Shown here in pieces: positions 1-17,275 of a stretch of DNA of 17,275 nt. Below the pieces are notes generated by a model. That model saw only the letters and a list, made by a program, of their open reading frames with translations, did no database searches and was not told where the DNA came from. Position 1 is the stretch's first letter. Every line of letters starts with the position of its first letter. Origin of the DNA: Amoeboradix gromovi X-113 (Eukaryota; Fungi; Sanchytriomycota); contig JADGIF010000148.1 of the NCBI GenBank assembly GCA_018985225.1, positions 1-17,275 on the forward strand, given 5' to 3'. Both the position numbers and the translations under genes were made by a program.

Positions 1-105
1 TCAGTCGCTGGTGTAGGGAGTCAACTGGCATTGTCTCTTTCCTGTGGATATTATCGGTTTCTATGAAGCAGGACTTCTAGTGAGAGCCATGAAATTACGA
101 AACAG
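1..105 (+). ncRNA. Putative Fanzor2 omega-RNA-like scaffold / element right end, copy A (cut by window start)
   Basis: Shares CTGGCATTGTC (25-35), CTGTGGATATT (42-52) and terminal ACAG (102-105) with copies B and D. TTTC...GAAA closing stem. Confidence 0.6.
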
Positions 106-111
106 TTTTCA

Positions 112-378
112 ATGGGTAGACAAAAAATCCCAGTAAACGAAATTATCGTCGATGAACGAAGAAGACAGGTAACCTTGTGCAAAAGAAAAAAAGGATTGTT
201 CAAAAAAGCTATGGAATTGGTAAAATTGACTGGGGTGGACGTGGCAGTTATTATTTTAAATAATGACAAGGCTTATGGCTATTCAAATCGGAATGTTAAC
301 GACATAGTATCACAATACTCTAGTCAAACAAAGATTCCCGAGTTTGATGCAAATGTTAGCATTGGAAACCATTTTTAA
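112..378 (+). CDS. MADS-box transcription factor, MEF2/Rlm1 type, 88 aa
   Basis: MGRQKI...DERRRQVTLCKRKKGLFKKAMELVKLTGVDVAVII is a clear MADS domain, followed by a short MEF2-like segment (KAYGYSN..VNDIVSQY). AATAAA follows the stop. Confidence 0.9.
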   Translation: MGRQKIPVNEIIVDERRRQVTLCKRKKGLFKKAMELVKLTGVDVAVIILNNDKAYGYSNRNVNDIVSQYSSQTKIPEFDANVSIGNHF

Positions 379-407
379 TTTAATAAATTTATTTTTATAA
401 TTCGTGT

Positions 408-668
408 AAGGACTATATTAGTAAAGCATTCAGTTGGTTGATCTAACTCTTCATTAATCTTCAATTAATATTCTTCTTAATTTTAACAACTTACCTCTAT
501 TATTCTACTTACAATATGAATCTGCTTCTCTTCTAATTTGCTAGTATTAAACGAGTCCATTAGCTTATAAACCTGCTCTGCGTTCAAAGGTGCTTGCACT
601 TTTGTAGACAAATTGAAAAGCATCGACCCTTGCTTTATCCTTTTTAATTTCAGATTCCTGAAATAAAC
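408..668 (-). pseudogene. Possible decayed Fanzor2/TnpB C-terminal fragment
   Basis: Minus-strand frame VYFRNLKLKRIKQGSMLFNLSTKVQAPLNAEQVYK...EEKQIHIVS, then ELDQ...TNIVL. Resembles the Fanzor2 pattern NLSKxxKRxL..YKF..xxIVxE..LDRD.NAxxNI. Zinc cysteines are absent. Confidence 0.35.
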
Positions 669-813
669 CTGAGACTAAACTAGAAGCAAGAAGTTTAATG
701 CTTAGAGACCGCTATTTATTAAAGTTCAGTTTAATATATTTCTGACTCGTTCATTGGACGCAATCCAAATCATTCCACCTCAACGTTCAAAACCAATTAG
801 CCCCCATACAGAA

Positions 814-2130
814 ATGAATCAAAATATCGCGGTTTCGCTCTTTGCTGCATGTATTGGTACTTTTCATTTTGGATTTCACCTTGCAGAATTAAATGCTCCT
901 AGAACTCTAATACAATGTCAAAATGCTGCACAGTCCAACTGCATAAACATGACAGATTTTGACTATTCTTTAATTACAGCTGTGTTTGCGATCGGCGGAC
1001 TAATAGGCACCCTATTAGCCAGTTTTCTAACCTATGGCAGAAGACCGCAATTATTTTTATCCGCTATTTTGACTATTGTTGGGTCATTGATTTTAACAAC
1101 TGGATCTCTTATATCCCTGTTAATTGTTGGAAGATTGGTTGTAGGAATTAGCGGTGGTTTAGCCCTATTTAATACTCCAATTTACATAAACGAAATATCA
1201 CCCTTACACTTGCGAGGTACTCTTGGGACAGTAAGTCAAATTGCTATCACGTTTGGAATATTCGTTGCATCTCTGTTGGGATACTTGCTTACAGAGTGGA
1301 GATATATCGTTGGATTTCCTGTTATTACTAGTTGGATTCAGATATTAGCCCTTTCGCGTTGTTATGAATCTCCAAAGTATCTTTTTAGGGCATCTGAGTC
1401 AAACAGAGACGATTCTAGATCGATTCTAGAGAAATTTAGGCCCTCTGGTTATGATACAATTCAAGAAATGGACTCCTGGCACCAAAAGTCTGACACTCTA
1501 GAAATCACGTTTATGGAGTTTTTACGCGACAAGGTATACCTAAAGCTACTTATTGGTATAGTTGCTGCTCATTCTAGTATGCAACTAACAGGTATAAATG
1601 TCGTTTTCTTTTATTCCGTTTCTATCCTAAAACAACTATTTGGAAATCAAGCAGCTTTTTATTCGCTGATCATTTCTGTGTACAACATTCTGTCTACGCT
1701 AATATCTTCTTTGTTAATAGAACGTGTAGGCCGCAAGAAGCTCTTGATGATTAGCATAGTCTGGACATCTGCTTCGCAATTGGGCTTGATGTTAAGTCTA
1801 ATTTGTAACATGCCAGCACTCGCACTAGTGTTCTTTATATCAATAGTTACTGGGTTTTCTGTTGGATTGTGTGTCATTCCTTTTATTCTAATCGGTGAGT
1901 TGTTTGATGGCATATCTGTCGAGTATGCAAATAGCGTAGCAAATCCTGTGAATTGGATTTCTACTTTTCTTGTTTCGTTTGGATTTATTCCCCTTACAGG
2001 GATTTTGAATGAATATGTATTTTTGATTTTCGTAGCATATGGAGCGATATCATTTTTCATAATGCTAAAATGTATTCCGGAAACTAAAGGGATTACACCT
2101 TCTGATTTGCAGAAGAGATTAAGACAATAA
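814..2130 (+). CDS. MFS sugar porter (GLUT/SLC2-like hexose transporter)
   Basis: Motifs GTFHFGFH, YGRR, PIYINEISPLHLRG, ESPKYL, QLTGINVVFFYS, ERVGRK, PETKG, with about 12 hydrophobic segments. First ATG is at 814; the ORF track start at 754 is TTG. Confidence 0.93.
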   Translation: MNQNIAVSLFAACIGTFHFGFHLAELNAPRTLIQCQNAAQSNCINMTDFDYSLITAVFAIGGLIGTLLASFLTYGRRPQLFLSAILTIVGSLILTTGSLISLLIVGRLVVGISGGLALFNTPIYINEISPLHLRGTLGTVSQIAITFGIFVASLLGYLLTEWRYIVGFPVITSWIQILALSRCYESPKYLFRASESNRDDSRSILEKFRPSGYDTIQEMDSWHQKSDTLEITFMEFLRDKVYLKLLIGIVAAHSSMQLTGINVVFFYSVSILKQLFGNQAAFYSLIISVYNILSTLISSLLIERVGRKKLLMISIVWTSASQLGLMLSLICNMPALALVFFISIVTGFSVGLCVIPFILIGELFDGISVEYANSVANPVNWISTFLVSFGFIPLTGILNEYVFLIFVAYGAISFFIMLKCIPETKGITPSDLQKRLRQ

Positions 2131-2163
2131 ATAAATTTGTTTAAAGAATATCCTTCTTGTTTG

Positions 2164-2577
2164 ATGTCGAATCCTGCAAAAGGTGGAACACGACTGGATG
2201 ATTTTGACTTCAAACATACCTTTAAAGGCAAGAATGATTTGTTAAATGAACTAAAAATGAAGGAAAGAGATGCTCGTAAAGAATTAATAGAAGAAACAAT
2301 AAATGGTGAAAAATTGGTGGATTACGAAAGTAGCACAGAGGAAAGCAATAATACAGCGAGTGAAGATACAGACAGTAGCGACAATTTAGAAGATTTACTA
2401 ACAGAACTAGAACACAAGGAGCCCGTGAACATTGAATCACAATTTAAATTAAAACGGAAATGGGACGAAGACGTTGTGTTCAGCAACACGCCATCTGCAC
2501 CAAAGAAAGCCAAACATATTAACGATAAACTGAATAGCGCAGAACATATTAAGTTCATGTCAAAGCTATTCAAATGA
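2164..2577 (+). CDS. CWC15: Spliceosome NTC-associated protein Cwc15
   Basis: N-terminal PAKGG, acidic middle region, and C-terminal FKLKRKWDEDVVFSN...INDKLNSAEHIKFMSK, matching the Cwc15 KRRWDDDVVF...NDxxRSxFHxKFM signature. First ATG at 2164. Confidence 0.88.
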   Translation: MSNPAKGGTRLDDFDFKHTFKGKNDLLNELKMKERDARKELIEETINGEKLVDYESSTEESNNTASEDTDSSDNLEDLLTELEHKEPVNIESQFKLKRKWDEDVVFSNTPSAPKKAKHINDKLNSAEHIKFMSKLFK

Positions 2578-2617
2578 ATTGCATTGGAAATTTATTAAAC
2601 ACGGATAAAAGAAATAA

Positions 2618-3679
2618 ATGCCGTTAATCACAATAACCGGCTATCCTTCTTCTGGAAAGTCTACAAGATCCAGGCAGCTTAAGCAGTTGCTTCGCAGATA
2701 CGCAAATGAATCTGTAGAATATAAAAAACAAGAGCTATTTGGGTCTACTGACATGATAGACCCAATGTCTCGATTTTTTGAACCGCAAATGACAATCAAA
2801 GAAGAAAGCACAATAGCCGAATTAGACAAAAACACCCTAGATCCAATTGAGTGTGAGTCTGTGGTTTTCAATGGCCATAAATTTCAAGTTATAATTTTGA
2901 GTGATGAGTCGTTGCATATTGATGTCAATTTGTATGAAAATTCTTTTTCAGAAAAACAGGCACGCGCGACTCTGTTAAGCGCTGTAGAGAGACACCTTAC
3001 CCCCGATACTATTGTAATTTGCGATGCATTAAACTATATTAAAGGTTTTCGCTACCAGTTGTCTTGCATAGCTCGCGCAGTAGGCACTCAATGGTGTGTT
3101 CTTCATGTTGATACTCCTGCCTCAATTTCGAAAGGCTGGAACAGCAAGTACTCTGATCGGTTGTTTGATAACCTTATTTATCGCTATGAAGAGCCAGTAG
3201 CTTCAAACAGATGGGACTCTCCATTATTTACTCTGGTATATTCTAAGTGCCTATACAGCAGTGATATGCCGCTTAATTCAGCCGATCATGCACCATTAAT
3301 TGACATTTGTGACTTCGTTTTTGGTGGTACCGCTAAAACTCAAAATTTTTCTACCGTCCATAAGCCTGTTTGCGATTCCAATTATCTGCAGGTCTTGAAC
3401 AAAACGACGATGCAGGTAGTGAAGGATGTGTTAAAAATATCAAATACAATTCCGGGTGCGGAAATTAAGCTGTATTCTAATCTTGATGTTGTGTTTATTA
3501 TGCCATTGAGAGTATCTAAACAAAAGTTAAAAGGGTTGCAAAGGTCATTTGTTAATTTAAGAACTAACAATTGCGCAAATGTCTCAGACATCAACTCAGA
3601 AAACGATGAAAATCTTAAAACCCTGTTTATTGAATATTTAAATGAAAGTTTAGAAGAAGTGAATAAAAATTTAGCGTAA
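2618..3679 (+). CDS. KTI12: Elongator-associated P-loop protein Kti12
   Basis: MPLITITGYPSSGKST P-loop, EKQAR, DALNYIKGFRYQL, RYEEP...RWDSPLF. Confidence 0.93.
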   Translation: MPLITITGYPSSGKSTRSRQLKQLLRRYANESVEYKKQELFGSTDMIDPMSRFFEPQMTIKEESTIAELDKNTLDPIECESVVFNGHKFQVIILSDESLHIDVNLYENSFSEKQARATLLSAVERHLTPDTIVICDALNYIKGFRYQLSCIARAVGTQWCVLHVDTPASISKGWNSKYSDRLFDNLIYRYEEPVASNRWDSPLFTLVYSKCLYSSDMPLNSADHAPLIDICDFVFGGTAKTQNFSTVHKPVCDSNYLQVLNKTTMQVVKDVLKISNTIPGAEIKLYSNLDVVFIMPLRVSKQKLKGLQRSFVNLRTNNCANVSDINSENDENLKTLFIEYLNESLEEVNKNLA

Positions 3680-3691
3680 TTTAATAAACTT

Positions 3692-4591
3692 TTACTTTTC
3701 CAGTACCATTTCTATGAATGATTCCGGGTCATTCAGAACTTGATCCACAATCAGTATTTTATTCACGGGCCGAACTGTTTTAGATAGAATTGGCAACTGC
3801 TTCTTACCAATTAGTGTCTTAAACATAGGCAGCAAAGCAATCCCACATATGTTATCGGCATTCTTCTGATAAACTAAATCGCCCTGAAGACTAAACTCAT
3901 AACATGAACTACTAGTACTGCAAACAACATTTTGGCCTTTCCATAATATGTGCTTGCAATCCTCAACTGTTTTCAAGAGTCTGAAAACTTTGTTCTTAAA
4001 CGTACCAACTTCACCATTAACTAGAACAACGCATATGCCATAAATTCCGATGTCAAAATCTACTATACCGTACTCCAAAGTGACATCCTGAATCAGCTTG
4101 TTTTTGTAGCATTTGAGATGCTTATCAGCTGAAGAGATATAAAAAACACTATCCCATAACTTGATTTGAGAAACACCTAAAGAATGCATAAATTCATCAA
4201 CACAAGTGAAAGAGTTAGACAGTATTTGATCTAAATACCACACTTTCACAGAGCCATCTGAGCATCCAGTTAGCAAGTAATACTCGTTATGTTCAATACC
4301 AGTTATCATCTGATAATGTGCTTCAAAAGTACAAAGCAGGTCTCCTTTCAAATTATAAATCAGCACTTTGCCTGTAACAGTCCCAAGAATTAAATAGTCC
4401 CTCAAGTTCATGCAGCTCAGTGAAGGTATGCTGACCATTTTTACTTGACCATGCCAATTTTGAATTGTGATTGTATTGTCATGATAACTAATTATATATT
4501 TATTGCTCATTTGCAAAAGACTGCTGCTTGTGTTAAAAGTCCTTTCCTTTGTGATTATTTGCGATGTTGTATGAATTGCAACGATATTCAT
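3692..4591 (-). CDS. WD40 protein, IPI3/WDR18-like (Rix1 complex, pre-rRNA processing)
   Basis: GKVLIYNLKGDLLCTFEAHYQMITGI...LLTGCSDGSVKVWYL resembles the Ipi3/WDR18 G.LL..F.AHYQ.IT motif. Shortened protein. Confidence 0.7.
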   Translation of the reverse strand: MNIVAIHTTSQIITKERTFNTSSSLLQMSNKYIISYHDNTITIQNWHGQVKMVSIPSLSCMNLRDYLILGTVTGKVLIYNLKGDLLCTFEAHYQMITGIEHNEYYLLTGCSDGSVKVWYLDQILSNSFTCVDEFMHSLGVSQIKLWDSVFYISSADKHLKCYKNKLIQDVTLEYGIVDFDIGIYGICVVLVNGEVGTFKNKVFRLLKTVEDCKHILWKGQNVVCSTSSSCYEFSLQGDLVYQKNADNICGIALLPMFKTLIGKKQLPILSKTVRPVNKILIVDQVLNDPESFIEMVLEK

Positions 4592-4624
4592 TGGTTTGAT
4601 CCTTTGTTATTAAACGCAGGGTTA

Positions 4625-6256
4625 ATGCTTCCAGACTGCAAACCGATAGATCTCGATTATTTCAGTTCGACGCAGGATGGGTTCATTGGTAGTGTTTATG
4701 GTGACGGTTCTACCGGATTAATCTTCAGTCCCCCATTTAGGATTCATATGGGAACCCATTTGAATCGCGGTGATCGACAATTTATTTTAAACGAAATGAG
4801 ACAGAAATATACTGCAGAGTATTTGTATTTAGATAGGATTACCCAAACAGAATATGTTGATAATGAAAAACTGCTAGAGTACCAAAGTCGCTTGTATTAT
4901 CCACTGTACAATCGCTTATATTTAAGTTACAACAACCTTGAATTTCACTCAGATAGCATATGTAGTAGTACTGTTTATGATATTCAAGTTCAAAAGGAAA
5001 CGCTCTTCGCGAGACTAATGTCATCAGTAGTGTACTTCCCAATCTCAGATCCAAAAAAGGTTCGCTATACAAATCAGTCCAGTTTATTATTAGACGTACT
5101 ACCTGATGAAATTTATGATACTCTTTATTTAGGAATTAATAACTATTACCTTAAGATATTTGATCTAGAACATAACAAAAAGATTCGGTCATTTGCTTTC
5201 AAAACATGCTCCAGTGATATACCATTGCCTTACAAGTGGTGCTGCATACAACCTGGTACTTGGCAATTTGAAAAATACTTTGTGAATGAAAAATATATTT
5301 ATCTGGTGGATATTCGCGAGAATCAAGCAAACGCACTTGTGAACCTAAAGCATCTGAAGTACTTTGGATTTAAGAAGTGTAGTGACATGAACTACGTCAG
5401 TTTAGACAGCGATTCTGTGAATCTGTACGACACTCGAATGATATCTACCCCCTTATTATCTCGCAATCACGAAATAAGGAACATGGCGCCCAGATTGTAT
5501 GATGTTAGCATGGCTAAAAATATTCTTTCAGTTCTTGTCGGATCGTTTTCGTATCCAAGCTTGCGTGTTATTGAATTTGAAGAATCTAATAAATGGCATG
5601 TCAATTACAACATAAAAGAAAGTGATGTCTACCCATTTGATGGCGATCATTTTGCTTACTGGGACAACAAAGATACTTCTCATTTAAAGCTTCTTTCCGC
5701 CACGTATAAGAATAAAGAGGATATAATATTGGTTTATAACGATGGCACCCAATGCAATGCTAAGATGAATCGCAAAGAAACTGAATGCTCAAAATTGCCA
5801 GTTTGTTATTCAAGTAAGTTGAAATATGAAGAAGTCGTGGAAGAGAGTTTGATATTGAACGACACAAACATTGTTGGCTCATTGAAATCAGACGAATTTG
5901 ATACTGATTATAAGAAAGCCTTGCCTTTAAAATTTTTCAAGAATGATAGAATAAGAAAATTATTATCAAAACGGCTGGAAAATGACTCAACAGATTTAGA
6001 AACATTACCATGGGATACTGTGGAGATGCCGAGTGAAATGGCATTGATAATTAGTTATCCTGATAACCCTAATAAAATGGTATGGAAATTTGCTCAGAGA
6101 TTCAAGCAAATGATGGCACAAAATGAATCCTGCTATAGTACACTAATAAACTTTCAGGAGACTGGATTTTCCACAAATCTTCCCTCAATTGTGAACACAT
6201 CTGCGTTCAAACTTCAAAAACCTGTGAAAAAGAAGAAGAAGAGAAAGCTTGTTTAA
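4625..6256 (+). CDS. Possible RNA polymerase I core factor subunit RRN6/TAF1C-like protein
   Basis: Long ORF with beta-propeller-like IYLVDIR and LYDTRMISTPLLSRNH (compare D.R.P..PLL.W.H) and a basic KKKKKRK tail. Start placed at ATG 4625 to avoid overlap with the minus-strand WD40 gene. The CDS is likely real; the identity is tentative. Confidence 0.5.
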   Translation: MLPDCKPIDLDYFSSTQDGFIGSVYGDGSTGLIFSPPFRIHMGTHLNRGDRQFILNEMRQKYTAEYLYLDRITQTEYVDNEKLLEYQSRLYYPLYNRLYLSYNNLEFHSDSICSSTVYDIQVQKETLFARLMSSVVYFPISDPKKVRYTNQSSLLLDVLPDEIYDTLYLGINNYYLKIFDLEHNKKIRSFAFKTCSSDIPLPYKWCCIQPGTWQFEKYFVNEKYIYLVDIRENQANALVNLKHLKYFGFKKCSDMNYVSLDSDSVNLYDTRMISTPLLSRNHEIRNMAPRLYDVSMAKNILSVLVGSFSYPSLRVIEFEESNKWHVNYNIKESDVYPFDGDHFAYWDNKDTSHLKLLSATYKNKEDIILVYNDGTQCNAKMNRKETECSKLPVCYSSKLKYEEVVEESLILNDTNIVGSLKSDEFDTDYKKALPLKFFKNDRIRKLLSKRLENDSTDLETLPWDTVEMPSEMALIISYPDNPNKMVWKFAQRFKQMMAQNESCYSTLINFQETGFSTNLPSIVNTSAFKLQKPVKKKKKRKLV

Positions 6257-6319
6257 TAAACCAATTTTTTATTTCAATAGTTTAAAAGAAAATTTGCTCG
6301 ATACACGAGGGAACTTTTA

Positions 6320-6907
6320 ATGACTGGAGTAAAGTTTGCAGTAGTTTGTGCTAGTAACTTCAATCGAAGTATGGAAGGCCACTGCGTAATGCTGGATGCA
6401 GAACTCGATGTAAAGTCATACGGAACCGGAACTAGTTGCAAGTTGCCGGGTAAAAAGCAAAATCAACCAAACATTTACAAATATGGAGAAGCCACTTATC
6501 AGGAGATATATGAAGATTTGGAAAAGCAGGATCTTGAGTTTTATACCAACAATGGATTGATTAAGATGGTTGACAGAAATAGAAAGATCAAAGAGAGACC
6601 GGAAAAGTTTCAAATTAGCGCGAAGAATCATAAGTTTGATGTCATTATATGCTGCGAAGAAAGGGTTTTTGATGCAGTTATTGAGGATTTGGCCAGTAGA
6701 GAATACAGCAACCATCCTGTTCATGTTTTAAATGTTGAAATAAAAGACAATGCTGAGCAAGCTAAACTTGGTGGTGAAATAATTAGAGAGCTGGCTTTGA
6801 GCTTTGAGAAAAGTAGTAACATACACACTGAAGGATTCAAAATTGTTACAGAAACAAAGTCGAAATACTTAAATACAAGATTTATGTACTGCGTTTCAAT
6901 AAACTAA
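6320..6907 (+). CDS. SSU72: RNA polymerase II CTD phosphatase Ssu72
   Basis: VCASNFNRSMEGH catalytic CX5R motif, SYGTG..KLPG, FDVIICCEERVFD. Confidence 0.96.
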   Translation: MTGVKFAVVCASNFNRSMEGHCVMLDAELDVKSYGTGTSCKLPGKKQNQPNIYKYGEATYQEIYEDLEKQDLEFYTNNGLIKMVDRNRKIKERPEKFQISAKNHKFDVIICCEERVFDAVIEDLASREYSNHPVHVLNVEIKDNAEQAKLGGEIIRELALSFEKSSNIHTEGFKIVTETKSKYLNTRFMYCVSIN

Positions 6908-6954
6908 GAGTTATCTACTTTTTCTTTCGATTGCTATTATTCGCACTATCTATT

Positions 6955-7190
6955 ATGGTACTACCTGAAATCTCTAACACCTTCTACAAAAAATTGATGG
7001 CACTTGGAAATATCCCATATATTAAGATTTCATTATCCGAAAAGCCCTTGAAAACACTTGCTTTTTAGTTCTATACTCATACGCAAATATAACCAGAGTG
7101 ATTTACCAAGCGCATACTCTTGTTTCTTACTGCAATGCCACAATGACCCTTTCTGTTTCGCGTATGACTGTCGTTGCCATATAAACCTTC
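6955..7190 (+). pseudogene. Possible heavily decayed Fanzor2/TnpB C-terminal fragment
   Basis: Frameshifted pieces in the expected order: VLPE, KSLTPSTK/KLMAL, C-SYCN (7121-7136), YDCRCHINL (7163-7189; compare YTCTDCHLKI in the remnant near 15980-16010). Confidence 0.35.
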
Positions 7191-7339
7191 TTTCGTCACT
7201 TTATTTCTCTACCACCGTATTTTAACTAGCGGCTTTCCTGGACAGGTTCCCTATACATCAGATTCACCTTATTGAGTTTGGTTCTGCTACAAAAGAAGGA
7301 TGGGACCTATGATGGTCTGATAAGATCTACATACCACAA

Positions 7340-7417
7340 TCTTGTGCCTTTTTGGTGGAATTTGGACTTCTGATATGTTTGTATCTTTTTCTTGTTATCA
7401 TCCGCTTTTACCCCCAG
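7340..7417 (+). ncRNA. Divergent candidate omega-RNA-like 3' domain, copy F
   Basis: GTGGAA (7355), stem GGA..TGATA/TATCA.TCC, GCTTT and terminal CAG (7415-7417): the same architecture as the other copies but with little sequence identity. Confidence 0.3.
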
Positions 7418-7434
7418 TCTGCTATTCATACAAA

Positions 7435-8634
7435 ATGTCCCACTTGTTTTTGTCCGTTAAGAAGCTTGGAAAGCCAAATTTGATAATACTAGGTGCTGGA
7501 CCAGTTGGTTTATGCGCTGCACATTTGCTAAGCAAGACCTGTGATGTGAAATTAATAGATTTTGCAATACCTCATGAGAAACCTACGGAATTTGGAACTC
7601 AGGTAGTATCATTGATTAAGCCATCTTTAAATATGCTGAATTCGATTATTGATTTGAACAGTGTATTGATGCAGCCATATTCAAGAGTCAAATGTCGAGT
7701 AGACTCGTCTGAATTCGCATTTCCAGTTGAAGCATGCATTTTAGACGTAGCCAGCCTAAAATATGAGTTGTATAGGAAATTGCCGCAAAATGTAAAGTTC
7801 ATCCAGGGCAAAATAGAGAGAATAGACTGCACTGCAGACTCTGTAACAGTGATTTGCAACAGTGATTCCCATCATTCCGAGATGGCTTTAAATACCCTAG
7901 GAAAATATAATGTATTTACCAGTAATGTTAAAAGGTTTGATTACCATGAGGTTGGAATAGTGGCTTCGTTAAAATTTACTGATAAAAACAGCCTAGGGTT
8001 TCAAAGATTTTTACCAACTGGTCCCATAGCGCTACTTCCAACTGGATCTGAGAGTGCTTCTTTGGTGTGGACTCTTCCTCGAAATGCTGGCGAGGATGTT
8101 ATCGAATATGCAAATAACTTGGAAAAAAGAACAAATTTGATTAACTTGGCGCTCCAAAATCCAGAGTATGATGTGGATTTTAAGTTGAGCAACCTAAATG
8201 AAGATTTGGAAGTTTGTAGTACAGACTACATCCCGAACGTAAAATCGGTGTCTAGCTTTAAATCATTTCCACTAGGGTTTCACCATTTATCTGAATGTGG
8301 CAAGGAAAGAATACTAGCCATAGGCGATGCTGCCCATTCCATACATCCTTTGGCAGGAATGGGACTAAATTTGGGTTTGGGTGATGTTAAGTCATTAGTG
8401 AGTATATTTGAAAATATGAAAACAAAAGTAGATGCAGAGAAGGTTATTGAGAATTTCGAAAAGCAATCCCATCTTAGAAGTTCATCGATGATATGGGCCT
8501 GTGATTTTATGCACGATATTTTTGCTACTCGTGGATCTTTTGTCTCGTTTGCTAGGGCTGTGTCAATAAAGGTGTTTAGTTCACAGTCATTCTGGTCAAA
8601 TTTTATGAGTGCGAAAGTTAATAAATTATTTTAA
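7435..8634 (+). CDS. COQ6: Ubiquinone biosynthesis FAD monooxygenase Coq6
   Basis: IILGAGPVG, FQRFLPTGPIALLP, SLVWT, FPL, GDAAHSIHPLAGMGLNLGLGDV. Likely ATG at 7435. Confidence 0.9.
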   Translation: MSHLFLSVKKLGKPNLIILGAGPVGLCAAHLLSKTCDVKLIDFAIPHEKPTEFGTQVVSLIKPSLNMLNSIIDLNSVLMQPYSRVKCRVDSSEFAFPVEACILDVASLKYELYRKLPQNVKFIQGKIERIDCTADSVTVICNSDSHHSEMALNTLGKYNVFTSNVKRFDYHEVGIVASLKFTDKNSLGFQRFLPTGPIALLPTGSESASLVWTLPRNAGEDVIEYANNLEKRTNLINLALQNPEYDVDFKLSNLNEDLEVCSTDYIPNVKSVSSFKSFPLGFHHLSECGKERILAIGDAAHSIHPLAGMGLNLGLGDVKSLVSIFENMKTKVDAEKVIENFEKQSHLRSSSMIWACDFMHDIFATRGSFVSFARAVSIKVFSSQSFWSNFMSAKVNKLF

Positions 8635-8794
8635 TTCCACTTGTTCTCGTTAGAAACCTTGATTTTCGGAAAAGTTTTGAATTTTCACAAAGAAATTAGC
8701 TAGGCTAGTAGCTCAGTTACGATGATTCTTACCCTTTAACTACCTTGAGGCTACATTAACTTTAAGTTATTTCTTTCCATTTAACATATTCCGG

Positions 8795-8905
8795 ATTACA
8801 TCACTTGATTCCATTTGTCATTTGAGGAAAGGAAAAATATTTGAGCAATCAAAAATGTTTAAAATAATTTAGTTATCAAGTGCTCGTCATAAATTCGTGA
8901 CAATG
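8795..8905 (+). pseudogene. Decayed Fanzor2/TnpB C-terminal tip
   Basis: A single frame reads ITSLDSICHLRKGKIFEQSKMFKII*LSSARHKF, matching the spacing of YTSKTCSxCG..KIFxCxxC...DRDxNxARNIF. It lies directly upstream of scaffold copy B. Confidence 0.4.
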
Positions 8906-8920
8906 ATTTATCTATTTAAT

Positions 8921-9054
8921 GAGTAGCGAAAGCTGAATTAGCACAAACAGCCGTAGAGCGTGAGCAACCACCTTAACAGGTCTGCTGGCATTGTCAGCCT
9001 TGCTGCGGAAATTCCTGATTTTCTCGTAAATCAGGAGTTCGTTATATAGCACAG
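8921..9054 (+). ncRNA. Putative Fanzor2 omega-RNA-like scaffold, copy B
   Basis: Co-linear with 15927-15821 (-): GTAGCGAAAGC, AGCGTGAGCAACCAC, hairpin CTGGC-ATT-GTCAG, TGCGGAAA, 12-bp hairpin AATTCCTGATTT/AAATCAGGAGTT, terminal ACAG. Confidence 0.72.
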
Positions 9055-9163
9055 TAGCATACTGCTAATAAGTAAATAATATTAAATAAAGTCGTTATTC
9101 TTGTTGCACTGAATTTATTATTTAAAATATTTGCTTTAGTTTTTATATTTGATATCTCCCTTG

Positions 9164-9745
9164 TTAAGCTTCCATATCTTCTTCGGTGCTAACTTCATCA
9201 GGTATTACTCTTAACTTCAGGTCGTGCACAAAGTGCAAGTCAACCGTTCCTTTCAGCAAGCGCTGGATATAAAGCACTTGATCCTTATCTCCAATGATCT
9301 CAATAATTACGTCCAAGTACAGCTGATAAAATTCTTCTCCGTAGAAGAATTTGTCTTTAGGTTCAACAATATTGTAAACCTTTATTGTGGTGTCTTTGTA
9401 TGAATACATATGTCCGATATGCAGTCTATGGGTTCGAACCGCAGATCCAACTGAAGGTAAAAAGAAATGTGCAATCTCAGAAATGTCACCGTGTACCACA
9501 CTGTTAATTCTCTTTCTCCTAGTCAACCCATCCACTTGTTCCGGAGGTGATAGGTACAGAAGTTCCCAGTCCTTGCTATTGAACTCATTCTCCAAAGATA
9601 AGCTATTTGCGAGTTCTACTTTGTATGCTTTAAACTGCTTTGATGTCGTACAGTACAAATCTAAAGTTGTCCAGAGCAGCTTTGGTGGCTCTGCTCCACT
9701 AAATGAGCCATAAAGTGAGTATTCAATTTGTTCAACAATTGTCAT
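9164..9745 (-). CDS. Probable Mediator subunit Med18/Srb5-like protein
   Basis: EYSLYG near the N-terminus, WELLYLSPPE, GHMYSYKDTTIKVYNI and LKGTVDL are compatible with Med18. Likely ATG at 9745. Confidence 0.55.
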   Translation of the reverse strand: MTIVEQIEYSLYGSFSGAEPPKLLWTTLDLYCTTSKQFKAYKVELANSLSLENEFNSKDWELLYLSPPEQVDGLTRRKRINSVVHGDISEIAHFFLPSVGSAVRTHRLHIGHMYSYKDTTIKVYNIVEPKDKFFYGEEFYQLYLDVIIEIIGDKDQVLYIQRLLKGTVDLHFVHDLKLRVIPDEVSTEEDMEA

Positions 9746-9902
9746 GAGAAATAATGAAACTCCCCACAATATTAAAAAATCTATATATATATAGTCGAAA
9801 TTAATAATGGCGAGATTATTTCAGGACCTCTGCCGTAAATGACCTTCAAAGGTCTCCGATTAATTTAAAAGTAAAACGATTTATTTGAAATTCAAGAGGT
9901 CT

Positions 9903-11576
9903 TTAAAATTCAAAAGAAAGTTTCAAAATCAGTCCAGTCATTCCAAAAAACAGGACTATACTCAGCAACTTGGTAATGCTCTGAAATCTTTTTGATCTTC
10001 TATCTTCAAACAACATCATCGTCTTAAAATCTTTTGATTTTATCTTTGCTTCTTGAATCTGTGGTATAACCAGCGATATTGTCCATAATATTATGGTCAC
10101 TACTCCGCTCAATAGGATGGCAAAGTGATTAAAATGCATACATTGGAATAGCGGTCCACCTAAATGAGTTGGTGTCGAAGCGTTGACGCATTCTTGCTTA
10201 TATGCAAAATGAATTGCTAATCTGGTTCCCCCGAGAACTACTCCGATTACAAGCCCAAAATTGGCTGCTAGCTCTGTTATTCGTGGTGATATCATTCCCC
10301 AAACTACCACTGTAGTTAATACAGGTGAAATGTGATTCATTACCATTTGGGTAACCAAGTATATACTATCATGTTGAGTTTTTATTATCCTGGTCCATAA
10401 GATACCTACTACTATCATCGCGACTGTAAATAACCTGCCAACCAACACTAATTCAGAATCAGATGCATTTCTGCGGATAGTTCTTCTGTAAATATCTATG
10501 CTAAATATGGTGCTACTAGCATGAAAACAAGCGCTTAAGGATGCGGTCATGCTCGCAAATATGGCGCCTAGGATGATACCAGTAAGACCTGAAGGGAATA
10601 TATAGAGCATTAAATATGCATACGCTTTATTGGCTTCTTCTCCATTGCTCATATCTAATGAGCACCAGACCTGGTTATTAGGCACTTCCACGCCATGAAT
10701 GCACGATTCATAAAGCATTCTAGCTGTAAACCCAGGCACAATTATAATCCAAAATGTTGATAACTTTAAATATCCAGCTATAACAGTACCTAATCTACTG
10801 TCATCAATCGTCTTGCCACTGTTAGCGCGCTGGCACATCTCTTGGTCCAGGCACCAATACCATAGGCTAGCCAAACCTTGACCTATGAGCATTCCAACTG
10901 GACTATAATTAGGATCATCCAGACCTCTGAACAGTTTTAATAAATTCTCGTTGTTTGTCTGGTAAAACATATGAATTAGGTTACCTAATCCACCGAACAG
11001 GTTTAGACATACAATGCAGGCGCTTATACCACCAATTAAAAATATTGCCAGCTGAGCTATGTCAGTATACATTATGGCTGACAAGCCACCTACCGCTGTG
11101 TAAATACCAGTTAATACTAAAACGGTAGCCACAGAAATTTCAGAATTTAATCCTAAAATAGTCTCGAACAGGATGCTAGCGGCAAATACACTAGCGGATA
11201 TTTTAACTACTGTCGCCGCAAACAGAGTAATAAATGCACATAAAATTCTAGTCGTTTTATTAAATCTCTGCTCCAAATACTCAGGAACTGTACTAACATT
11301 TTTGTAGTAAATTGTAAAGACCCATCCTAGAAGCAGCAGTAGATAAGTAGCGTACCACTCATAAAGTACAACACCCATTCCTGTTGACGATGCAGCCGCT
11401 ATTTGACCCACAAAATGTTCACTGCCTATATTCGCAGCCATTAGAGATGGTCCGATTAACCAATATTCTGCCTTAAACGTAAAGTATTGCGATTTTGGAG
11501 TAGACTTTAAAAACGAGAATCCAAATAAACTAACAACTAGAATACAACATATGGCTATATCCAGGTTGGCGATCAT
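9903..11576 (-). CDS. Sodium:solute symporter, SGLT/SLC5-like
   Basis: SLMAANIGSEHFVG, YEW, TVPEYLEQRF, YTAVGGLSAIMYTD, WYWCLDQEMCQR, STIFSIDIY, ELVLVGR. Confidence 0.93.
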   Translation of the reverse strand: MIANLDIAICCILVVSLFGFSFLKSTPKSQYFTFKAEYWLIGPSLMAANIGSEHFVGQIAAASSTGMGVVLYEWYATYLLLLLGWVFTIYYKNVSTVPEYLEQRFNKTTRILCAFITLFAATVVKISASVFAASILFETILGLNSEISVATVLVLTGIYTAVGGLSAIMYTDIAQLAIFLIGGISACIVCLNLFGGLGNLIHMFYQTNNENLLKLFRGLDDPNYSPVGMLIGQGLASLWYWCLDQEMCQRANSGKTIDDSRLGTVIAGYLKLSTFWIIIVPGFTARMLYESCIHGVEVPNNQVWCSLDMSNGEEANKAYAYLMLYIFPSGLTGIILGAIFASMTASLSACFHASSTIFSIDIYRRTIRRNASDSELVLVGRLFTVAMIVVGILWTRIIKTQHDSIYLVTQMVMNHISPVLTTVVVWGMISPRITELAANFGLVIGVVLGGTRLAIHFAYKQECVNASTPTHLGGPLFQCMHFNHFAILLSGVVTIILWTISLVIPQIQEAKIKSKDFKTMMLFEDRRSKRFQSITKLLSIVLFFGMTGLILKLSFEF

Positions 11577-11640
11577 GTTTTACTCCTAAGTTAATTGCAC
11601 TTCACCTCACTCATTGATTTTGATCGAATAAATCATTTAT

Positions 11641-11823
11641 TATGATTACACGAAACCAGCCAAAGGAGCATGCAATCGGTGCAGACTTTTGCGACTGCAT
11701 GAAAAGTGGACAATCGTTTTCTCAAATATGGCAAATGGCTCCAAATCCTGAGGCTGGGAATTTCTAATCTAGAGAAATCGCTAGCGGATGTAGAGCCGGC
11801 TCTTTGCTCGGAACATTTTCTAG
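11641..11823 (+). pseudogene. Decayed Fanzor2/TnpB C-terminal tip
   Basis: One frame with several stops: YDYTKPAKGACNRC (CNRC at 11671-11682) ... FARNIF* (ARNIF at 11806-11820). It lies upstream of scaffold copy C. Confidence 0.45.
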
Positions 11824-11844
11824 AGATGATATGATGGTTTAAGT

Positions 11845-12038
11845 CAAGCGAAAGTAGTTGGTGGAACGTAATGACGCAATTATTAGTCAAACGTGTAATG
11901 TCTAGAAATATGAGCAAAACATTTGGAATCGTGCACATGAACAAAGACTTACATCTTTATAGCAGGCGACTGGCTTTTTCAATTTATGTGGAAAGTCTTG
12001 ATTTTTAGTAAACTAGGAGCTTTAATAAGCTTGGAAAG
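11845..12038 (+). ncRNA. Putative omega-RNA-like scaffold / element right end, copy C
   Basis: GCGAAAG at 11848, then CTGGC...TGTGGAAAGTCTTGATTTT..TAAACTAGGAGCTTT...GGAAAG. 11962-12038 is the exact reverse complement of 17199-17275. The 5' boundary is approximate. Confidence 0.68.
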
Positions 12039-12054
12039 TAATTTTGTTTATTTC

Positions 12055-13441
12055 TTAACTATATTGGCTTATGGACCTGTAGAAAGTGAGGCATATAAGC
12101 CCATTCAACAATACTACACTTGCAAACATACTCATTAGTATCCTAAATCCTAAAGATGTATATATAAATGTACTTATAGATGGCCCAATAAACATTCCTA
12201 TCGCCCAAGCGCAATTAAACAAACTATACACTTTCCCATGGCTGTTTGTGTTGCTTCCAATTAAGCTAGCAACGGGATTAAACATCAAACAGTTCCCAGT
12301 TCCCAGAAGCAAAAGTGCAACAATTTCCACCCAGAGAGCAGTAGATACACCTACTAGCACGTTAGAGCAGCTAGATAAAAGCATTCCGCATATCATTACT
12401 TTCAGACTACCGTGTTTATCTGCTAAACTGCCAAAGTATGATGAAAACAGAATATTAGGGACTGACATAACAATGAACATTAATCCTATGTGTGACGGGT
12501 TCAGATGAAATTCATCATTCAGATACAATGGTAAGACCGGCTCTAATCCTGATACTATACTAGCATTAAACAGAGTCAGTGTTAAACCGATTTGGACATT
12601 TGGCTTGCTTAACAACCCAGCAAAGGAATCATATCTATCATATTGCTCTTCTTGTTCCATTACCCAATTTCTTTTGACTTGAATTTGATAATCATCACTT
12701 ATTACCAGTCGATGAATAAAAGCCGCAATACTTAAAATTATGATAAATATAAATACAGAATTATACCCGAGAAATTCATAGAGTACACCACCAAGCATAG
12801 GTCCTATATTAATACATATTACCGATAAGGAATCCGATAAAGTTGTAAGTCAACACAGTTCCTAGCAGATTGCCCAAATTATCGGTGGCAATTTCACCAA
12901 TAACTGACAGTCCGATAGTCCAAGAAGCACCACCACTGACACCTGCAAGAAAACGAGCAACGAGTAAATGTGTAAATGCTGTACCAAGCATAAAGAACAA
13001 GCTACTAAGCATTAAACCAATGTATCCGATCAGCATAAAAATCTTTCTTTTTTGGTATTTGTCGCTTAAAAATCCGAATATAGGAGTAGCAATTAGCAAC
13101 CCAAATGCATAAGAGCCAAATAAGATACCGAGATAATCAGGAGATAAATTATATACCTGTGTAATCATTATTGGGAAAATGGGCAATATAATAGAATAAC
13201 TAAGCATGTCTAGAAATAAAGCAACGCATGTGCAGCTAACAACAGCATTAAATCCTAAATACCACGGTATGCTTTGAGAATTGTCTAATAAATTAGTAGT
13301 ATCAACTGGCGAAATCGGAGGGTCTAAGAACCTTTCGTTACTTTCAGCATCAAATTCTTGCTTTAAATTGTTTTGATTTAACAGAGTACCTTCTTCAATC
13401 CTAGCATCTGGTCTTAATAATAGCTGCTTTTTTTGTTTCAT
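12055..13441 (-). CDS. MFS transporter, SLC18/VMAT-like; two exons, join(13441..12823, 12803..12055)
   Basis: ALFLDMLSYSIILPIFP, GFLSDKY..RK, ARFLAGVSG, LEPVLP. Removing the 19-nt intron gives FLIGPMLGGVLYE, restoring the GPxxGG motif. Confidence 0.9.
12804..12822 (-). other. 19-nt spliceosomal intron
   Basis: GTAATATGTATTAATATAG has GT...AG ends, an in-frame TAA and a TTAAT branch-like motif. Its removal fuses two MFS half-ORFs in frame. Confidence 0.85.
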
Positions 13442-13569
13442 TTGGAGATTGCCCGAGCGGAAGCGTTTTTATTGGTACTTGGCACTTTAATGAGAGGACT
13501 TCAAAACGATGATCGAATCGGGGATAGAGGTAGACTCTTGCAAAACTCGGCCACAAAATAGTGTTTTGA

Positions 13570-15039
13570 ATGTTTTTTGAGACAAGCACAAATATGACTA
13601 GAGTTATATTTGACTCAATTCACAAGACAATTGAATTAGAAGACTATCTGTGGAGAATTGTGGATACTGACTACTTCCAGAGGCTGAGGCATTTGAAGCA
13701 AACTGGTATAAATAGTTATGTTTATGCATCTGCTACTCACTCTAGATTTGAACATTCAATTGGTGTATGTCATTTAGCTGGTGTCTTTATTAAGAAGCTA
13801 CATTACAAGCACCCCAATATTATTTCTAAACACGACATTATCTACATACAAATTGCAGCCTTGCTTCACGATGTAGGACACGGTCCCTTTTCTCATCTGT
13901 TCGAACGTGCGATGACACGACTGAATAAGAAGTTTGATCATGAACTGCAGTCTGTTACCATCTCTAAACTTATATTGACTTCAGTCCTCCCTATATGTAA
14001 ATTTGATTTTACGTTGGACTTAAACTTAGTAGCTGCAATCATCACTGGTGATACCGAACATCCTTATATAAAGTCCAAGCCATTTCTAAATGATATTGTG
14101 CACAACAGCAGCTCAGGCTTGGATGTTGACAAATTTGACTATTTGTTGCGCGACTCTTATCAATCTGGTATGTCGGTGACATTTGATGTCGATAGGATAT
14201 TTAAAATGGCTGTTTTGGCTTCCAAAATACCTAATTCATTGGACCCAAAGGATTATGTTCTAGCTTATCCTGAAAAAGAGAAATATCATTTATTAGAAGT
14301 TTTCACGAGTAGACACCGTATGCACAGACTTGTGTACACACATCCTGTATCAAGAGCTATTGAATTTATGGTTATAGATCTGTTTCAACTTGCAGATGAG
14401 TATTTCAATTTCTCAGAACTAATTCAAACCGACTATCTACGGCTGACAGATGACATCCTCTTAGAAATTGGTAGAAGCAGTAATTCTAAACTGAAAGAAG
14501 CCAGAAACATCTCGCAAAGAATAGGTAAAAGGCAGATTTACAAAAAAGTAATGCAGAAGATACTTCCCGAGAAAGTCTACAAGAGCTTGCTACTGCAGCA
14601 CAACAAAGACAAATATTTCATGCTAAAATATGCTGATGACATTGAATTTCCAAAAGATAACGTAATAGTTGATTTATTTAAAGTGAATTTTGGCAAAGGA
14701 ACTCAGAATCCGATTCAATGGATCAATTACGTAGATAGGGACCATAATTTGATTCCATTAGAGTCTTTTAGAATGGAAGATGTGACAGGGACAGGACCAG
14801 TAGCATTTGAGGAGTATATGTTGCGAATATATTGTAAAAATGAAGAATATTTACCAAAAGTACTGGATATTGTTGAAAAGTATTGGAATTTGGAATTGTC
14901 TAATAGTTGTAGAGGACCATTTGTGAATTATACTCCAAAAAAGAATCATGACCATGAGGCTGATAAATTATTGTCAAATGATTTGAGTTTATCACCAACA
15001 CCCGCTGGGAACCATAAAAAAAGAAGATTTGGGGAATAA
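13570..15039 (+). CDS. SAMHD1-like HD-domain dNTP triphosphohydrolase (no SAM domain)
   Basis: FQRLRHLKQ, HSRFEHSIGV, LLHDVGHGPFSHLFE, DVDKFDYLLRD, VYTH. The start could be ATG 13594. Confidence 0.93.
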   Translation: MFFETSTNMTRVIFDSIHKTIELEDYLWRIVDTDYFQRLRHLKQTGINSYVYASATHSRFEHSIGVCHLAGVFIKKLHYKHPNIISKHDIIYIQIAALLHDVGHGPFSHLFERAMTRLNKKFDHELQSVTISKLILTSVLPICKFDFTLDLNLVAAIITGDTEHPYIKSKPFLNDIVHNSSSGLDVDKFDYLLRDSYQSGMSVTFDVDRIFKMAVLASKIPNSLDPKDYVLAYPEKEKYHLLEVFTSRHRMHRLVYTHPVSRAIEFMVIDLFQLADEYFNFSELIQTDYLRLTDDILLEIGRSSNSKLKEARNISQRIGKRQIYKKVMQKILPEKVYKSLLLQHNKDKYFMLKYADDIEFPKDNVIVDLFKVNFGKGTQNPIQWINYVDRDHNLIPLESFRMEDVTGTGPVAFEEYMLRIYCKNEEYLPKVLDIVEKYWNLELSNSCRGPFVNYTPKKNHDHEADKLLSNDLSLSPTPAGNHKKRRFGE

Positions 15040-15283
15040 AAGCAATAAATTTATTTGAATTAAAATGTATTTACTTCTTCAAGAGTGCTGAAATTGGCAA
15101 TTGCTGGTTCAGCTTTGAGTATTTTAAAGCCAGCTGCGATACTGGTATATCTTGTTGTTCATTTGCCAATTGCTTTAATGCTGTCATAGAATCCAATTCC
15201 ATGATATTTAACAGGCGAAACATTGATGACCGCGCTTTTCCATACCGCTAATCCAGGTGCTTGGCGTGTTGCATATAAGTGAA

Positions 15284-15811
15284 TCACTATATGGGACACC
15301 AAATATAAAAACTAGACTAGCTCGTTTTTAAAGGAGGTGCTCCATACGGAGGAAATCATTAATAAAAGATCTTTTATTATACCAATTTTCTTTCATTGAT
15401 TGTATTCCTCTTTTCAAAATAAAACTAGAAGACCCACTATCTCTTTCAAATATATGAGGTCTTTGAGCATCTAAGCAAAAGGTGCATTTTCTTAGACGTT
15501 ATTCTTTTTTAGAGTCATTTTGTAATGTTATGCTAACATCATTACTCTTATCTATTCTAGTTTTTACAGAGTAATAGTGATATTTTGTTTGAAATAAAGA
15601 TTGGATGAAAGAGTAAGAGAATAACTGTACAGAATATTTATTTTTGAATTTCGATACAAAAAGTTATTTATTTTCCTTTCATACTCGTCAACTCCGCAAC
15701 TAGCTGAATGTCCACTCGTCTCTTAAATCCATAAAGTAATAAAGCTGAAATAATGTTCAAAGTTGTTACAGAAAGTTAGTCCAGTTTCTATATTTGATGT
15801 CCCATATGTGA
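15284..15811. mobile_element. Possible MITE / non-autonomous TIR element remnant
   Basis: Inverted repeat of about 36 bp: 15284-15319 TCACTATATGGGACACCAAATATAAAAACTAGACTA versus the reverse complement of 15777-15811 TCAC-ATATGGGACATCAAATATAGAAACTGGACTA. No clear TSD or internal ORF. Confidence 0.5.
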
Positions 15812-15820
15812 CGCTCTGAA

Positions 15821-15927
15821 CTGTCTCCTCGTTAAAAGCCCTGATTTCCGAGAAAATCGAGAATATCCACAGAGAAACTAGCAATGCTAGATCTCCGGTA
15901 CAGTGATTGCTCACGCTTTCACTACCC
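15821..15927 (-). ncRNA. Putative Fanzor2 omega-RNA scaffold, copy D
   Basis: Lies immediately downstream of the zinc-ribbon/DRD remnant. Contains GTAGTGAAAGCGTGAGCAATCAC, hairpin CTAGC-ATT-GCTAG, TGTGGATA, GATTTTCTCGGAAATC and terminal ACAG. Confidence 0.72.
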
Positions 15928-15950
15928 TGAGGCGGGATTGAATAAGGATG

Positions 15951-16170
15951 CATATACTTGATGTATACGTCTCTATCTATCTTCAAATGACAATCGGTAC
16001 AAGTGTAGGTTTCTAAATTAGTTTTCTTCAGAGTACCACACCTTGTACATGGCATCGAATTTCCTGTTTGGACCAGCTTATCAGTCTGAGACGAATGTAT
16101 GCTGTACCTGCTAGTTATTTCTTTAGATTTGATTTACCATTTGCGAAAAGAATTTCGAGTATTTAGGCTA
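15951..16170 (-). pseudogene. Fanzor2 / IS607-TnpB-like RNA-guided nuclease remnant (C-terminal part)
   Basis: SMPCTRCG-x10-CTDC-HLKIDRDV is the TnpB/Fanzor zinc ribbon plus RuvC-III DRD. Upstream frameshifted pieces PKY..SQMV and IRLRLISWSKQ fit the Fanzor2 LPxF.TS.MV and F(R/K)xRL segments. Confidence 0.8.
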
Positions 16171-16758
16171 TTAAAAAAATCTGGAAAAGTCTTGAAGTTA
16201 TACAAAAATACATACAAATTCGCGATAAATGATTTATTAAAGAAAATAGTCAAGCTGTATGCTCCGTTGTAGTGATTTCTCATGCTTCAACTACTCTGAG
16301 ACCAGATTAAACAGGAATGCATGCACTGAAATTATATGATACTTACTACCACATGGTCTCTATCCTTCCAGATTACAACTCAATTGATGAAAAGATAGAA
16401 TGCCAAATATTTTTTCAATTGAAAAGTCTGCAGAGAGACTAATATTGGAGCAATACAGCTCATGTTATCACAATAAATGATTTATTTAATGAAAAGAATG
16501 ATAGGTCATTACAAACGCACGTTGCATTGACACGTTTATTACTTGTAAGATGGATCCTGTGATAATTTAAAGGAAACAAAATAAACTAGCTAAATGTTCC
16601 GCTGCTGCTCGTTGATTTAGTTTTCTGTTTATTCCAGTGAAATTAATTAATTTGTTTTTCAACCAATGAAATGTTGCATTACATTGCCTTCCGCACCTCT
16701 AAAACAATTAGACATGGAGTCGTAATATAAATGGGAGCGAGTCCCTTAAACTATAAAA

Positions 16759-17148
16759 ATGTCCATTTCCAAAGGAATAAAAAACTATCTACACACAATT
16801 CTAAGTGACGAGGTCTACGAGAAGCTAGTTATATTTAAGCATACCTTTAAGATTAACAAGAACGTATTTTTGGTCGCGATCAACTACTACGAGTGCATAA
16901 AGCACCTGAAAATGGAAAACCATACCCCATTTACATTGTTTGCGAGCTGCTTAGTACTTTCATTAAAAACATGTGAAGATGACAAGTGGATGAATAGTTA
17001 CATAGCTGAAGCGTTGGACATTGATTTAAGAACATTGTACACAATTGAAAAGACTATACTGACAAACATGAATTATAATCTCATAAATATTGAGGGAGTC
17101 CAGAGAACTAGGACTCAGTTAAGACGACTATCGATATCGACCATATAA
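16759..17148 (+). CDS. Small cyclin-box protein, Pcl/Pho80-like
   Basis: VFLVAINYYE, LFASCLVLSLKTCEDDKWMNSYIAE and LYTIEKTILTNMNYNL match the Pcl cyclin N-terminal box. Confidence 0.8.
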   Translation: MSISKGIKNYLHTILSDEVYEKLVIFKHTFKINKNVFLVAINYYECIKHLKMENHTPFTLFASCLVLSLKTCEDDKWMNSYIAEALDIDLRTLYTIEKTILTNMNYNLINIEGVQRTRTQLRRLSISTI

Positions 17149-17198
17149 AATAAATTAGATTTATACCATTAAAGTACAACATTTGAATTAGTTTTAAG

Positions 17199-17275
17199 CT
17201 TTCCAAGCTTATTAAAGCTCCTAGTTTACTAAAAATCAAGACTTTCCACATAAATTGAAAAAGCCAGTCGCCTGC
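17199..17275 (-). ncRNA. Putative omega-RNA-like 3' domain / element right end, copy E (cut by window end)
   Basis: 77/77 identical to 11962-12038 in inverted orientation; the two diverge right after GGAAAG. Confidence 0.68.

Follow-up and report, generated by a model that had tools for sequence, protein, structure and literature searches.

Probable remnants of IS607-Fanzor2 mini-elements with omega-RNA-like right ends in the genome of the fungus Amoeboradix gromovi

The window analyzed here is an entire 17,275-nucleotide (nt) contig of the sanchytrid fungus Amoeboradix gromovi (JADGIF010000148.1; labeled G000:C380 in our set), part of a 10.55-Mb eukaryotic assembly of 1,319 contigs; the published genome of this species has a size of 10.5 Mb and was obtained via whole-genome amplification (PMC8371127). 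A single public sequencing run, of DNA, contains the window. The genes found in it are tightly packed and of fungal type (MADS box, sugar transporter, KTI12, FAD monooxygenase, sodium-solute symporter, and HD phosphohydrolase). Between such genes lie seven noncoding segments, A to G, that are very probably the right ends of non-autonomous mini-elements, about 0.3 to 0.6 kb long, of an IS607 transposon encoding the serine recombinase TnpA and the nuclease Fanzor2. Their location between fungal-type genes places them in a eukaryotic host, as opposed to bacterial pro-Fanzor elements. An earlier interpretation made without database searches (the sequence-only reading) listed five of the segments, A to E, as structured RNAs that outlive their Fanzor2 open reading frames (ORFs); F and G were found in the present analysis.

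Seven segments in one contig

The homology of the five segments proposed earlier was borne out by a covariance model, which scored A to E with E values from 6e-29 to 5e-5 within the window and also detected F and G. Since the training set of this model included A to D, additional profiles were made solely from copies of the main family, to which D belongs, at other loci. These profiles recovered D, G, F, B, A, and the ORF part of C and found essentially nothing on reversed DNA.

Segment D (15825 to 16256, minus strand; covariance score of 128 bits) is a member of the main ~600-nt family. Its left end starts from 16256, after the target ACAG, and is followed by a TnpA stub (~16061 to 16130), a Fanzor zinc finger (15938 to 16053), and an omega-RNA region (15825 to 15937) that ends with GAGGAG; RuvC-III is partially deleted. 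The flank at the position of a guide (15805 to 15824, minus strand) is host or older DNA, and its last bases form the target site of an adjacent element with terminal inverted repeats (TIRs), which is considered below. On the other side, D adjoins G (16255 to 16501, minus strand; profile E of 1.4e-19), an older mini-element composed of a left end (16460 to 16501), a RuvC-III remnant (~16310 to 16378), and the 5′ half of a scaffold (16255 to 16306). The scaffold of G is interrupted within a stem by the D insertion, and similar nesting into older scaffolds is seen on other contigs.

Segment F (8643 to 8937, minus strand; 77 bits) is a whole mini-element with a left end at ~8890 to 8937, a TnpA-stub region at 8763 to 8852, and a right end at 8643 to 8755. 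Its Fanzor ORF is almost wholly deleted, and positions 8770 to 8935 match contig C678 at 71%. F is abutted by the 5′ side of B (8950 to 9054, plus strand; covariance score of 71 bits), an old-type right end whose precise 3′ end is not fixed. B is without a close twin (the best other match is 78%) and has the best-kept inner and terminal hairpins (fold z of −2.2).

Segment C (11608 to 12038, plus strand) is a 431-nt mini-element. Its left end starts from 11608, the Fanzor remnant (11843 to 11946) aligns with the alternative-glutamate and zinc-finger codons (DNA profile E of 1.5e-8), and the right end (~11947 to 12038) has lost the 5′ stems of the scaffold. Segment E (17199 to 17275, minus strand), truncated by the contig end, is the right end of a twin of C, to which it is identical across 77 nt; the left end of this twin lies at the start of contig C1099. 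Segment A (1 to 86, plus strand) represents the 3′ portion of a right end of the old type (omega-RNA region), truncated by the contig start. It ends near 83 to 86, not at 105 as had been read, and positions 1 to 83 have a 99% identical twin at 3747 to 3829 of contig C666. In the region 87 to 378, a MADS-box frame begins ~25 nt past the end of A, which therefore sits in the promoter or leader of that gene; with only 88 codons, this frame may extend beyond an intron. Since C, F, and G retain left ends, they are mini-elements rather than free-standing RNA genes.

Other details of the sequence-only reading had to be revised. A ruined Fanzor C terminus was said to precede B, C, and D. This is the case for D (PF07282 E of 0.0012; profile E of 3e-8) and C, but not for B, where the upstream sequence scores 94 (p < 0.001) when read as F in antisense (left end plus TnpA stub), compared to 30 (p = 0.04) for the C-terminus reading. 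What lies upstream of B is thus F on the opposite strand, and B is without a C terminus of its own in view. The motif GYGAAAG, taken to be common to the segments, is located on the antisense of the F left-end region in B (8926) and in the ORF remnant in C (11848), and neither occurrence is homologous to that of D.

The twin of C, composed of E and the start of C1099, is a 431-nt unit with one base difference whose boundaries are the element ends; the C unitig, also 431 nt, has a depth of 63 compared to ~36. An amplification chimera was considered for E and excluded by two junctions with unique flanks, the doubled depth, and the one base difference. The twins of A and C both coincide with contig breaks. 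As decayed A and C have near-identical twins, badly decayed scaffolds must have been copied recently, without need for an intact scaffold. Such copying could have proceeded through TnpA acting in trans or through ectopic gene conversion.

Element structure and related genes in the assembly

Mini-elements of this genome have the order left end, often a TnpA stub, Fanzor C terminus, and omega-RNA region. Main-family copies are sharply bounded and consist of a ~150-nt left end preceded by RCAG, the last 100 to 140 Fanzor codons, and a right end closing with GAGGAG; a TnpA stub is present in some variants. Junctions were compared in 27 copies. Before the left end, R was found in 23, C in 25, A in 18, and G in 23 copies; at the right end, A was found in 21 and G in 22, and the sequence beyond was random. 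There is, then, an AG dinucleotide at both junctions, and conservation stops sharply past the right-end AG. No inverted repeat or target duplication was found at the element ends: A to G have no TIR, and main-family junctions show neither feature. In this, segments A to G differ from Spu-1-type ghosts, which are characterized by TIRs of about 30 nt, a CA upstream, and a TA target. IS607 elements recombine via a core dinucleotide (10.1101/2023.11.20.567912; PMC3627910). From the RCAG target motif of the copies, CAG is the predicted target-adjacent motif (TAM).

The TnpA stub shares 54% identity with the N terminus of an IS607 TnpA scoring above the NCBIfam cut-off. The earlier assignment to Fanzor2 is upheld by a longer relic on contig C385, in which a DPG RuvC-I, a glutamate lost from the canonical position and shifted to the alternative one, a C4 zinc finger, and RD, all expected of IS607-Fanzor2 proteins, are joined to a D-type right end.

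Genome-wide, there are 560 candidates for the TnpB zinc finger, 721 for the D right end, and 525 for the D left end. Unselected copies occur at 1 per 10 kb in 198 kb of loci, which translates into a rough number of ~1,000 in the genome; the overall range is roughly 700 to 1,100. This agrees with the large invasion with non-autonomous copies that the sequence-only reading had offered as one explanation. With 7 segments in 17 kb, the window is a dense spot.

The conclusion that the right ends encoded the omega-RNA of Fanzor2 is well supported by sequence comparison and predicted folding. Four structures make up the fold of near-intact copies, namely, a small hairpin, a stem with a GNRA cap, a bulged stem, and a terminal hairpin. 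A covariance model trained on this genome alone found a match (E of 0.007) in a contig of an unrelated metagenome (L083:4876-4982), which turned out to be the right end of an intact IS607 TnpA-Fanzor2 element. Compensatory changes preserve the GNRA stem there. The right end of a full-length element on contig C542 gave no usable sequence match to the model, yet it folds into the same topology (z of −2.9). The small hairpin has a loop that, in all three families, is able to pair with the nucleotides immediately preceding the terminal AG; two positions are compensated (four sequences only). The scaffold of three stems and this pseudoknot is 84% paired, with 3 compensated pairs across three families, which is weak statistically with 4 sequences. 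Such a pseudoknot has been described for IS607 TnpB and Fanzor2 RNAs (10.1101/2023.08.09.552727; PMC11832414). Among intact relatives, the one on this metagenome contig (GCA_013565735.1) is the nearest to the D family (49% over the C terminus). Its surroundings are virus-like, with tightly spaced unknown genes, domains of ricin-type lectins, and a gene for peptidase S74.

As to the pairings noticed earlier, CTAGC/GCTAG in D and CTGGC/GTCAG in B represent a genuine compensated pair (A-U in 15, G-C in 7, and G-U in 7 among 33). The proposed long-range closing stem, TCTC/GAGA in D, is paired in 59.8% compared to 58.4% in shuffles, and its last base was drawn from the variable flank. Only B and near-intact D-type copies fold better than shuffled sequences (z about −2); A (z of +1.3), C (+0.8), and F (+1.2) do not.

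A search for an IS607 serine recombinase, advised in the sequence-only reading, revealed 26 TnpA matches in the genome. The intact or domesticated cognate nuclease supposed to exist elsewhere did not turn up: no intact nuclease of the D family and no conserved or catalytically dead partner protein were found in the assembly, which is fragmented and derived from a single sample. Mini-elements lack the middle part of the parent protein; it is present at 9 places, none of the D family with an open frame of more than 147 codons.

The single full-length Fanzor2 is encoded by the C542 element. It has 672 open codons and three catalytic residues (D324, E467, and D501, as aligned to ApmFz2, the best PDB match). 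The element (L031:1417-3613, minus strand) is a full-length 2.2-kb IS607 that begins after ACAG, ends with AAAGAG, and has its own folded right end. Since the C-terminal half of its Fanzor2 is only 48% identical to the D parent and its right end is unrelated and single-copy, this Fanzor2 belongs to another family. Its TnpA has a stop codon in the N-terminal domain. EukProt lists the Fanzor protein under A. gromovi; the origin of the element is not certain because its source contig has a low assembly coverage of 0.86 and no recognizable host genes adjoining. The C542 element is a candidate for a TAM screen, the predicted motif being CAG.

TnpA proteins of C542 and C459 both pass NF033518, and the latter is an open frame beside a broken Fanzor2 of a third family. 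This third IS607-Fanzor2 family (L055:1512-3400, L057, L062, L072, and L067) is set apart by its right end, whose copies end alike near TTTAACGTAGGC, and includes one open TnpA frame. Its copies on C459 and C689 are followed by paralogs from an unknown family of ~295-amino acid proteins. A 299-codon open frame on C99 (L024:274-1173) with a DP-type RuvC-I, zinc finger, and RD is Fanzor1-like, scores over the PF07282 cut-off, and constitutes a second Fanzor lineage in this genome.

The TIR element next to D (15291 to 15806, minus strand) is a separate unit of ~516 nt with 32- to 34-nt TIRs, preceded here by CATA and followed by TA. It carries a decayed stump of a Fanzor1-type zinc finger and RD, which is clearer in L004:831-1103 and is given no score by NCBIfam. 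There are 1,402 candidates genome-wide, many of them full length at 83 to 93%, and a solitary remnant, one terminal repeat, is present at 9138 to 9166 of the window. The element resembles Spu-1 ghosts in size and ends, but neither the CA nor the TA target holds constantly across other copies. In 3 of 38 copies (window 15805 to 15825; L026 and L030), a TIR element starts within 25 nt of the D-type right end, and 11 Logan contigs show such joints; this adjacency may reflect scarce intergenic space only. Elsewhere in the window, a 19-nt GT-AG segment (12804 to 12822, minus strand) that separates two frames of one MFS transporter gene is likely a very short intron.

Decay of scaffolds and ORF remnants

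The RNA does not outlive the ORF, and scaffolds are not maintained after insertion. For the decay tests, ~55 copies were taken from 198 kb, or 2% of the genome, mostly on the basis of protein similarity. In 37 main-family copies, the numbers of private substitutions per site were 0.017 in the left end, 0.016 in the RuvC-II remnant, and 0.017 and 0.020 at paired and unpaired positions of the scaffold, respectively. At paired sites, 38 private changes were seen compared to 37.0 expected; 29 of them break the pair and 9 keep it (expected share kept of 0.27, p of 0.72). Private changes in the Fanzor ORF remnant are also neutral. A conserved 144-codon mini-protein, considered because many copies share the open frame, was rejected: private synonymous, nonsynonymous, and stop changes numbered 33, 122, and 8 compared to neutral expectations of 34.5, 131, and 10.4.

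Old copies gave the same picture. When 16 of them were compared to the main consensus, 28.8% of paired and 28.4% of unpaired positions differed, and divergence was 31% in the scaffold compared to 28% in the adjacent ORF remnant. Changed pairs were kept in 38% of cases compared to 27% under a naive neutral model. This excess is due to states shared among old copies, e.g., CTGGC/GTCAG and CTTG/CAGG; for private changes alone, pairs were kept in 17 to 25% compared to 24 to 25% expected. The caveat of the sequence-only reading that covariation could predate insertion was therefore justified, and its leading proposal, a trans-acting guide library retained while the ORF decays, was not supported: the comparison of RNA and ORF decay that it called for came out neutral.

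Individual scaffolds are damaged accordingly. None of the 39 young scaffolds is fully paired, and an inner-stem deletion of 3 nt is common to 13 of them. The pseudoknot is intact in 26 of 37 young copies compared to 1 of 7 old ones, and its small hairpin in 1 of 11 old copies. Typical main-family copies are 4 to 10% away from the consensus.

Origin of the copies and relation to known systems

In all likelihood, the copies are decaying mini-elements derived from IS607 TnpA-Fanzor2 transposons in several waves and are fossils today. Internal deletions left mini-elements that retain both ends. By analogy with IS607 biology, mini-elements would have moved through AG-core recombination by TnpA provided in trans from autonomous copies; right ends would be kept because TnpA needs them, and the omega-RNA scaffold, as it overlaps the right end, would be carried with it. 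For as long as an intact parent was present, its Fanzor2 may have employed RNAs transcribed from the ends to cut vacated sites (CAG plus flank), restoring the copies, an idea already advanced for Spu-1 ghosts (PMC10432273). After insertion, the RNA and ORF of each copy decay neutrally. Several waves left the older types A, B, C, F, and G and the main recent type D, with compensated pairs inherited from older subfamilies.

Several points weigh against this scheme. Near-identical twins of the badly decayed A and C are not explained by pure fossil decay. A selected minority below about a quarter of copies would escape the decay tests. Right-end matches exceed left-end matches (721 compared to 525 candidates, and 18 compared to at most 7 among old copies); left ends, being AT-rich and more diverged, are harder to detect, however. 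Last, no excision or empty allele was seen.

The twins would also fit a still-active selfish system. Here, the assembly would have collapsed or missed an intact parent Fanzor2 that currently loads omega-RNAs of mini-elements in better condition and so prevents their loss through excision, as has been proposed for Spu-1 ghosts. Source lineages, rather than most copies, would then be under selection. Recent movement implied by the twins, the mostly intact pseudoknot of young copies, a terminal hairpin with few inherited variants, the open IS607 TnpA frame on C459, and the fragmentation of the assembly at repeats all point in this direction. We nevertheless consider such a system unlikely, given the 9 remaining places of the parent protein middle with no long D-family frame, the distance of typical copies from the consensus, and the unrelated, single-copy right end of the sole full-length Fanzor2. 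A related idea, that a minority of copies, small enough to leave the overall mutation counts unaffected, is transcribed and loaded in trans by a Fanzor2 absent from the assembly, forming a dispersed guide repertoire still used by the host or the transposon, appears very unlikely; if it were true, the precisely bounded twins of decayed A and C/E would be products of guided copying.

A guide library with a host function, in which selection maintains dispersed scaffolds for use by a domesticated Fanzor, is highly improbable. The density of the window, the good fold of B, and the raw excess of kept pairs in old copies speak for it, but the excess disappears for private changes, the pseudoknot and its hairpin are rarely intact in old copies, old scaffolds are hit by new insertions, guides are no more than flanking sequence, and the assembly yielded no conserved or catalytically dead partner protein. 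Finally, the hairpins could be DNA-level features recognized by the transposase, or chance folds, with an omega-RNA never encoded. Consistent with this, RNAalifold produced no consensus fold and no pairs across copies, and an Rfam search gave no match for the segments. The chance of this explanation being correct is close to negligible, since three families of unrelated sequence share topology, a GNRA loop, and a compensated pseudoknot, and the overlap with the Fanzor2 3′ end agrees with the published omega-RNA position.

Fossil IS607-Fanzor2 mini-elements, the interpretation we favor, belong to a kind of system that is already known. Like ISvMimi/ApmFz2, ACa-1/2, NlovFz2, and MmeFz2 (PMC3627910, PMC10530073, and PMC11832414), the Amoeboradix family has a TnpA overlapping the Fanzor N terminus, DPG RuvC-I, a shifted glutamate, and a C4 zinc finger with RD. 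Shared features also include the lack of TIRs and target-site duplications, a structured right end with a pseudoknot to the last bases, and a 3-nt target motif ending in G. It differs in its fungal host, in its copy number (roughly a thousand, with internal deletions, compared to up to 122 Fanzor copies per genome in the literature; PMC10530073), in the target (RCAG compared to GGG, CCG, or TAG), and in the scaffold length (~115 nt compared to ~205). Spu-1 ghosts of Spizellomyces punctatus are likewise nuclease-less non-autonomous copies with a right-end omega-RNA, and a ghost-guide repertoire used in trans has already been proposed for their 134 loci (PMC10432273). However, Spu-1 is a Fanzor1 with 30-nt inverted repeats and 19 full-length genes (PMC10432273), whereas the Amoeboradix copies have IS607-type ends without TIRs, an ORF stump, and no intact cognate nuclease in the assembly. 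Bacterial IS607 TnpB elements (ISXfa1 and CboIStron; 10.1101/2023.08.09.552727, 10.1101/2023.11.20.567912) similarly recombine at a core dinucleotide, have a target motif that equals the nuclease TAM, include trans-mobile mini-elements, and undergo scarless excision; the Amoeboradix family differs in its AG core instead of GG, its location on a eukaryotic chromosome, and the fact that no group I intron was seen. TldR, the domesticated TnpB repressors (PMC10705468), would be a model for guides used by the host, but no conserved nuclease-dead partner or selected guides were found here.

Our literature search found no paper covering both Amoeboradix and Fanzor. As far as it shows, the host group, the copy number for a eukaryotic IS607-type element, the RCAG motif, and one assayable full-length Fanzor2 are new. 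The ghost-guide idea of the Fanzor literature met a natural test in this genome, and the outcome was negative. Both the target motif (RCAG, with CAG the predicted TAM) and the scaffold can be read directly from the copies, and the full-length Fanzor2, which has ends of its own, is open to assay. Overall, the results extend the range of IS607-Fanzor2 to a reduced parasitic fungus and show that a bacterial-type serine-recombinase transposon can reach ~1,000 copies in a eukaryotic nucleus.

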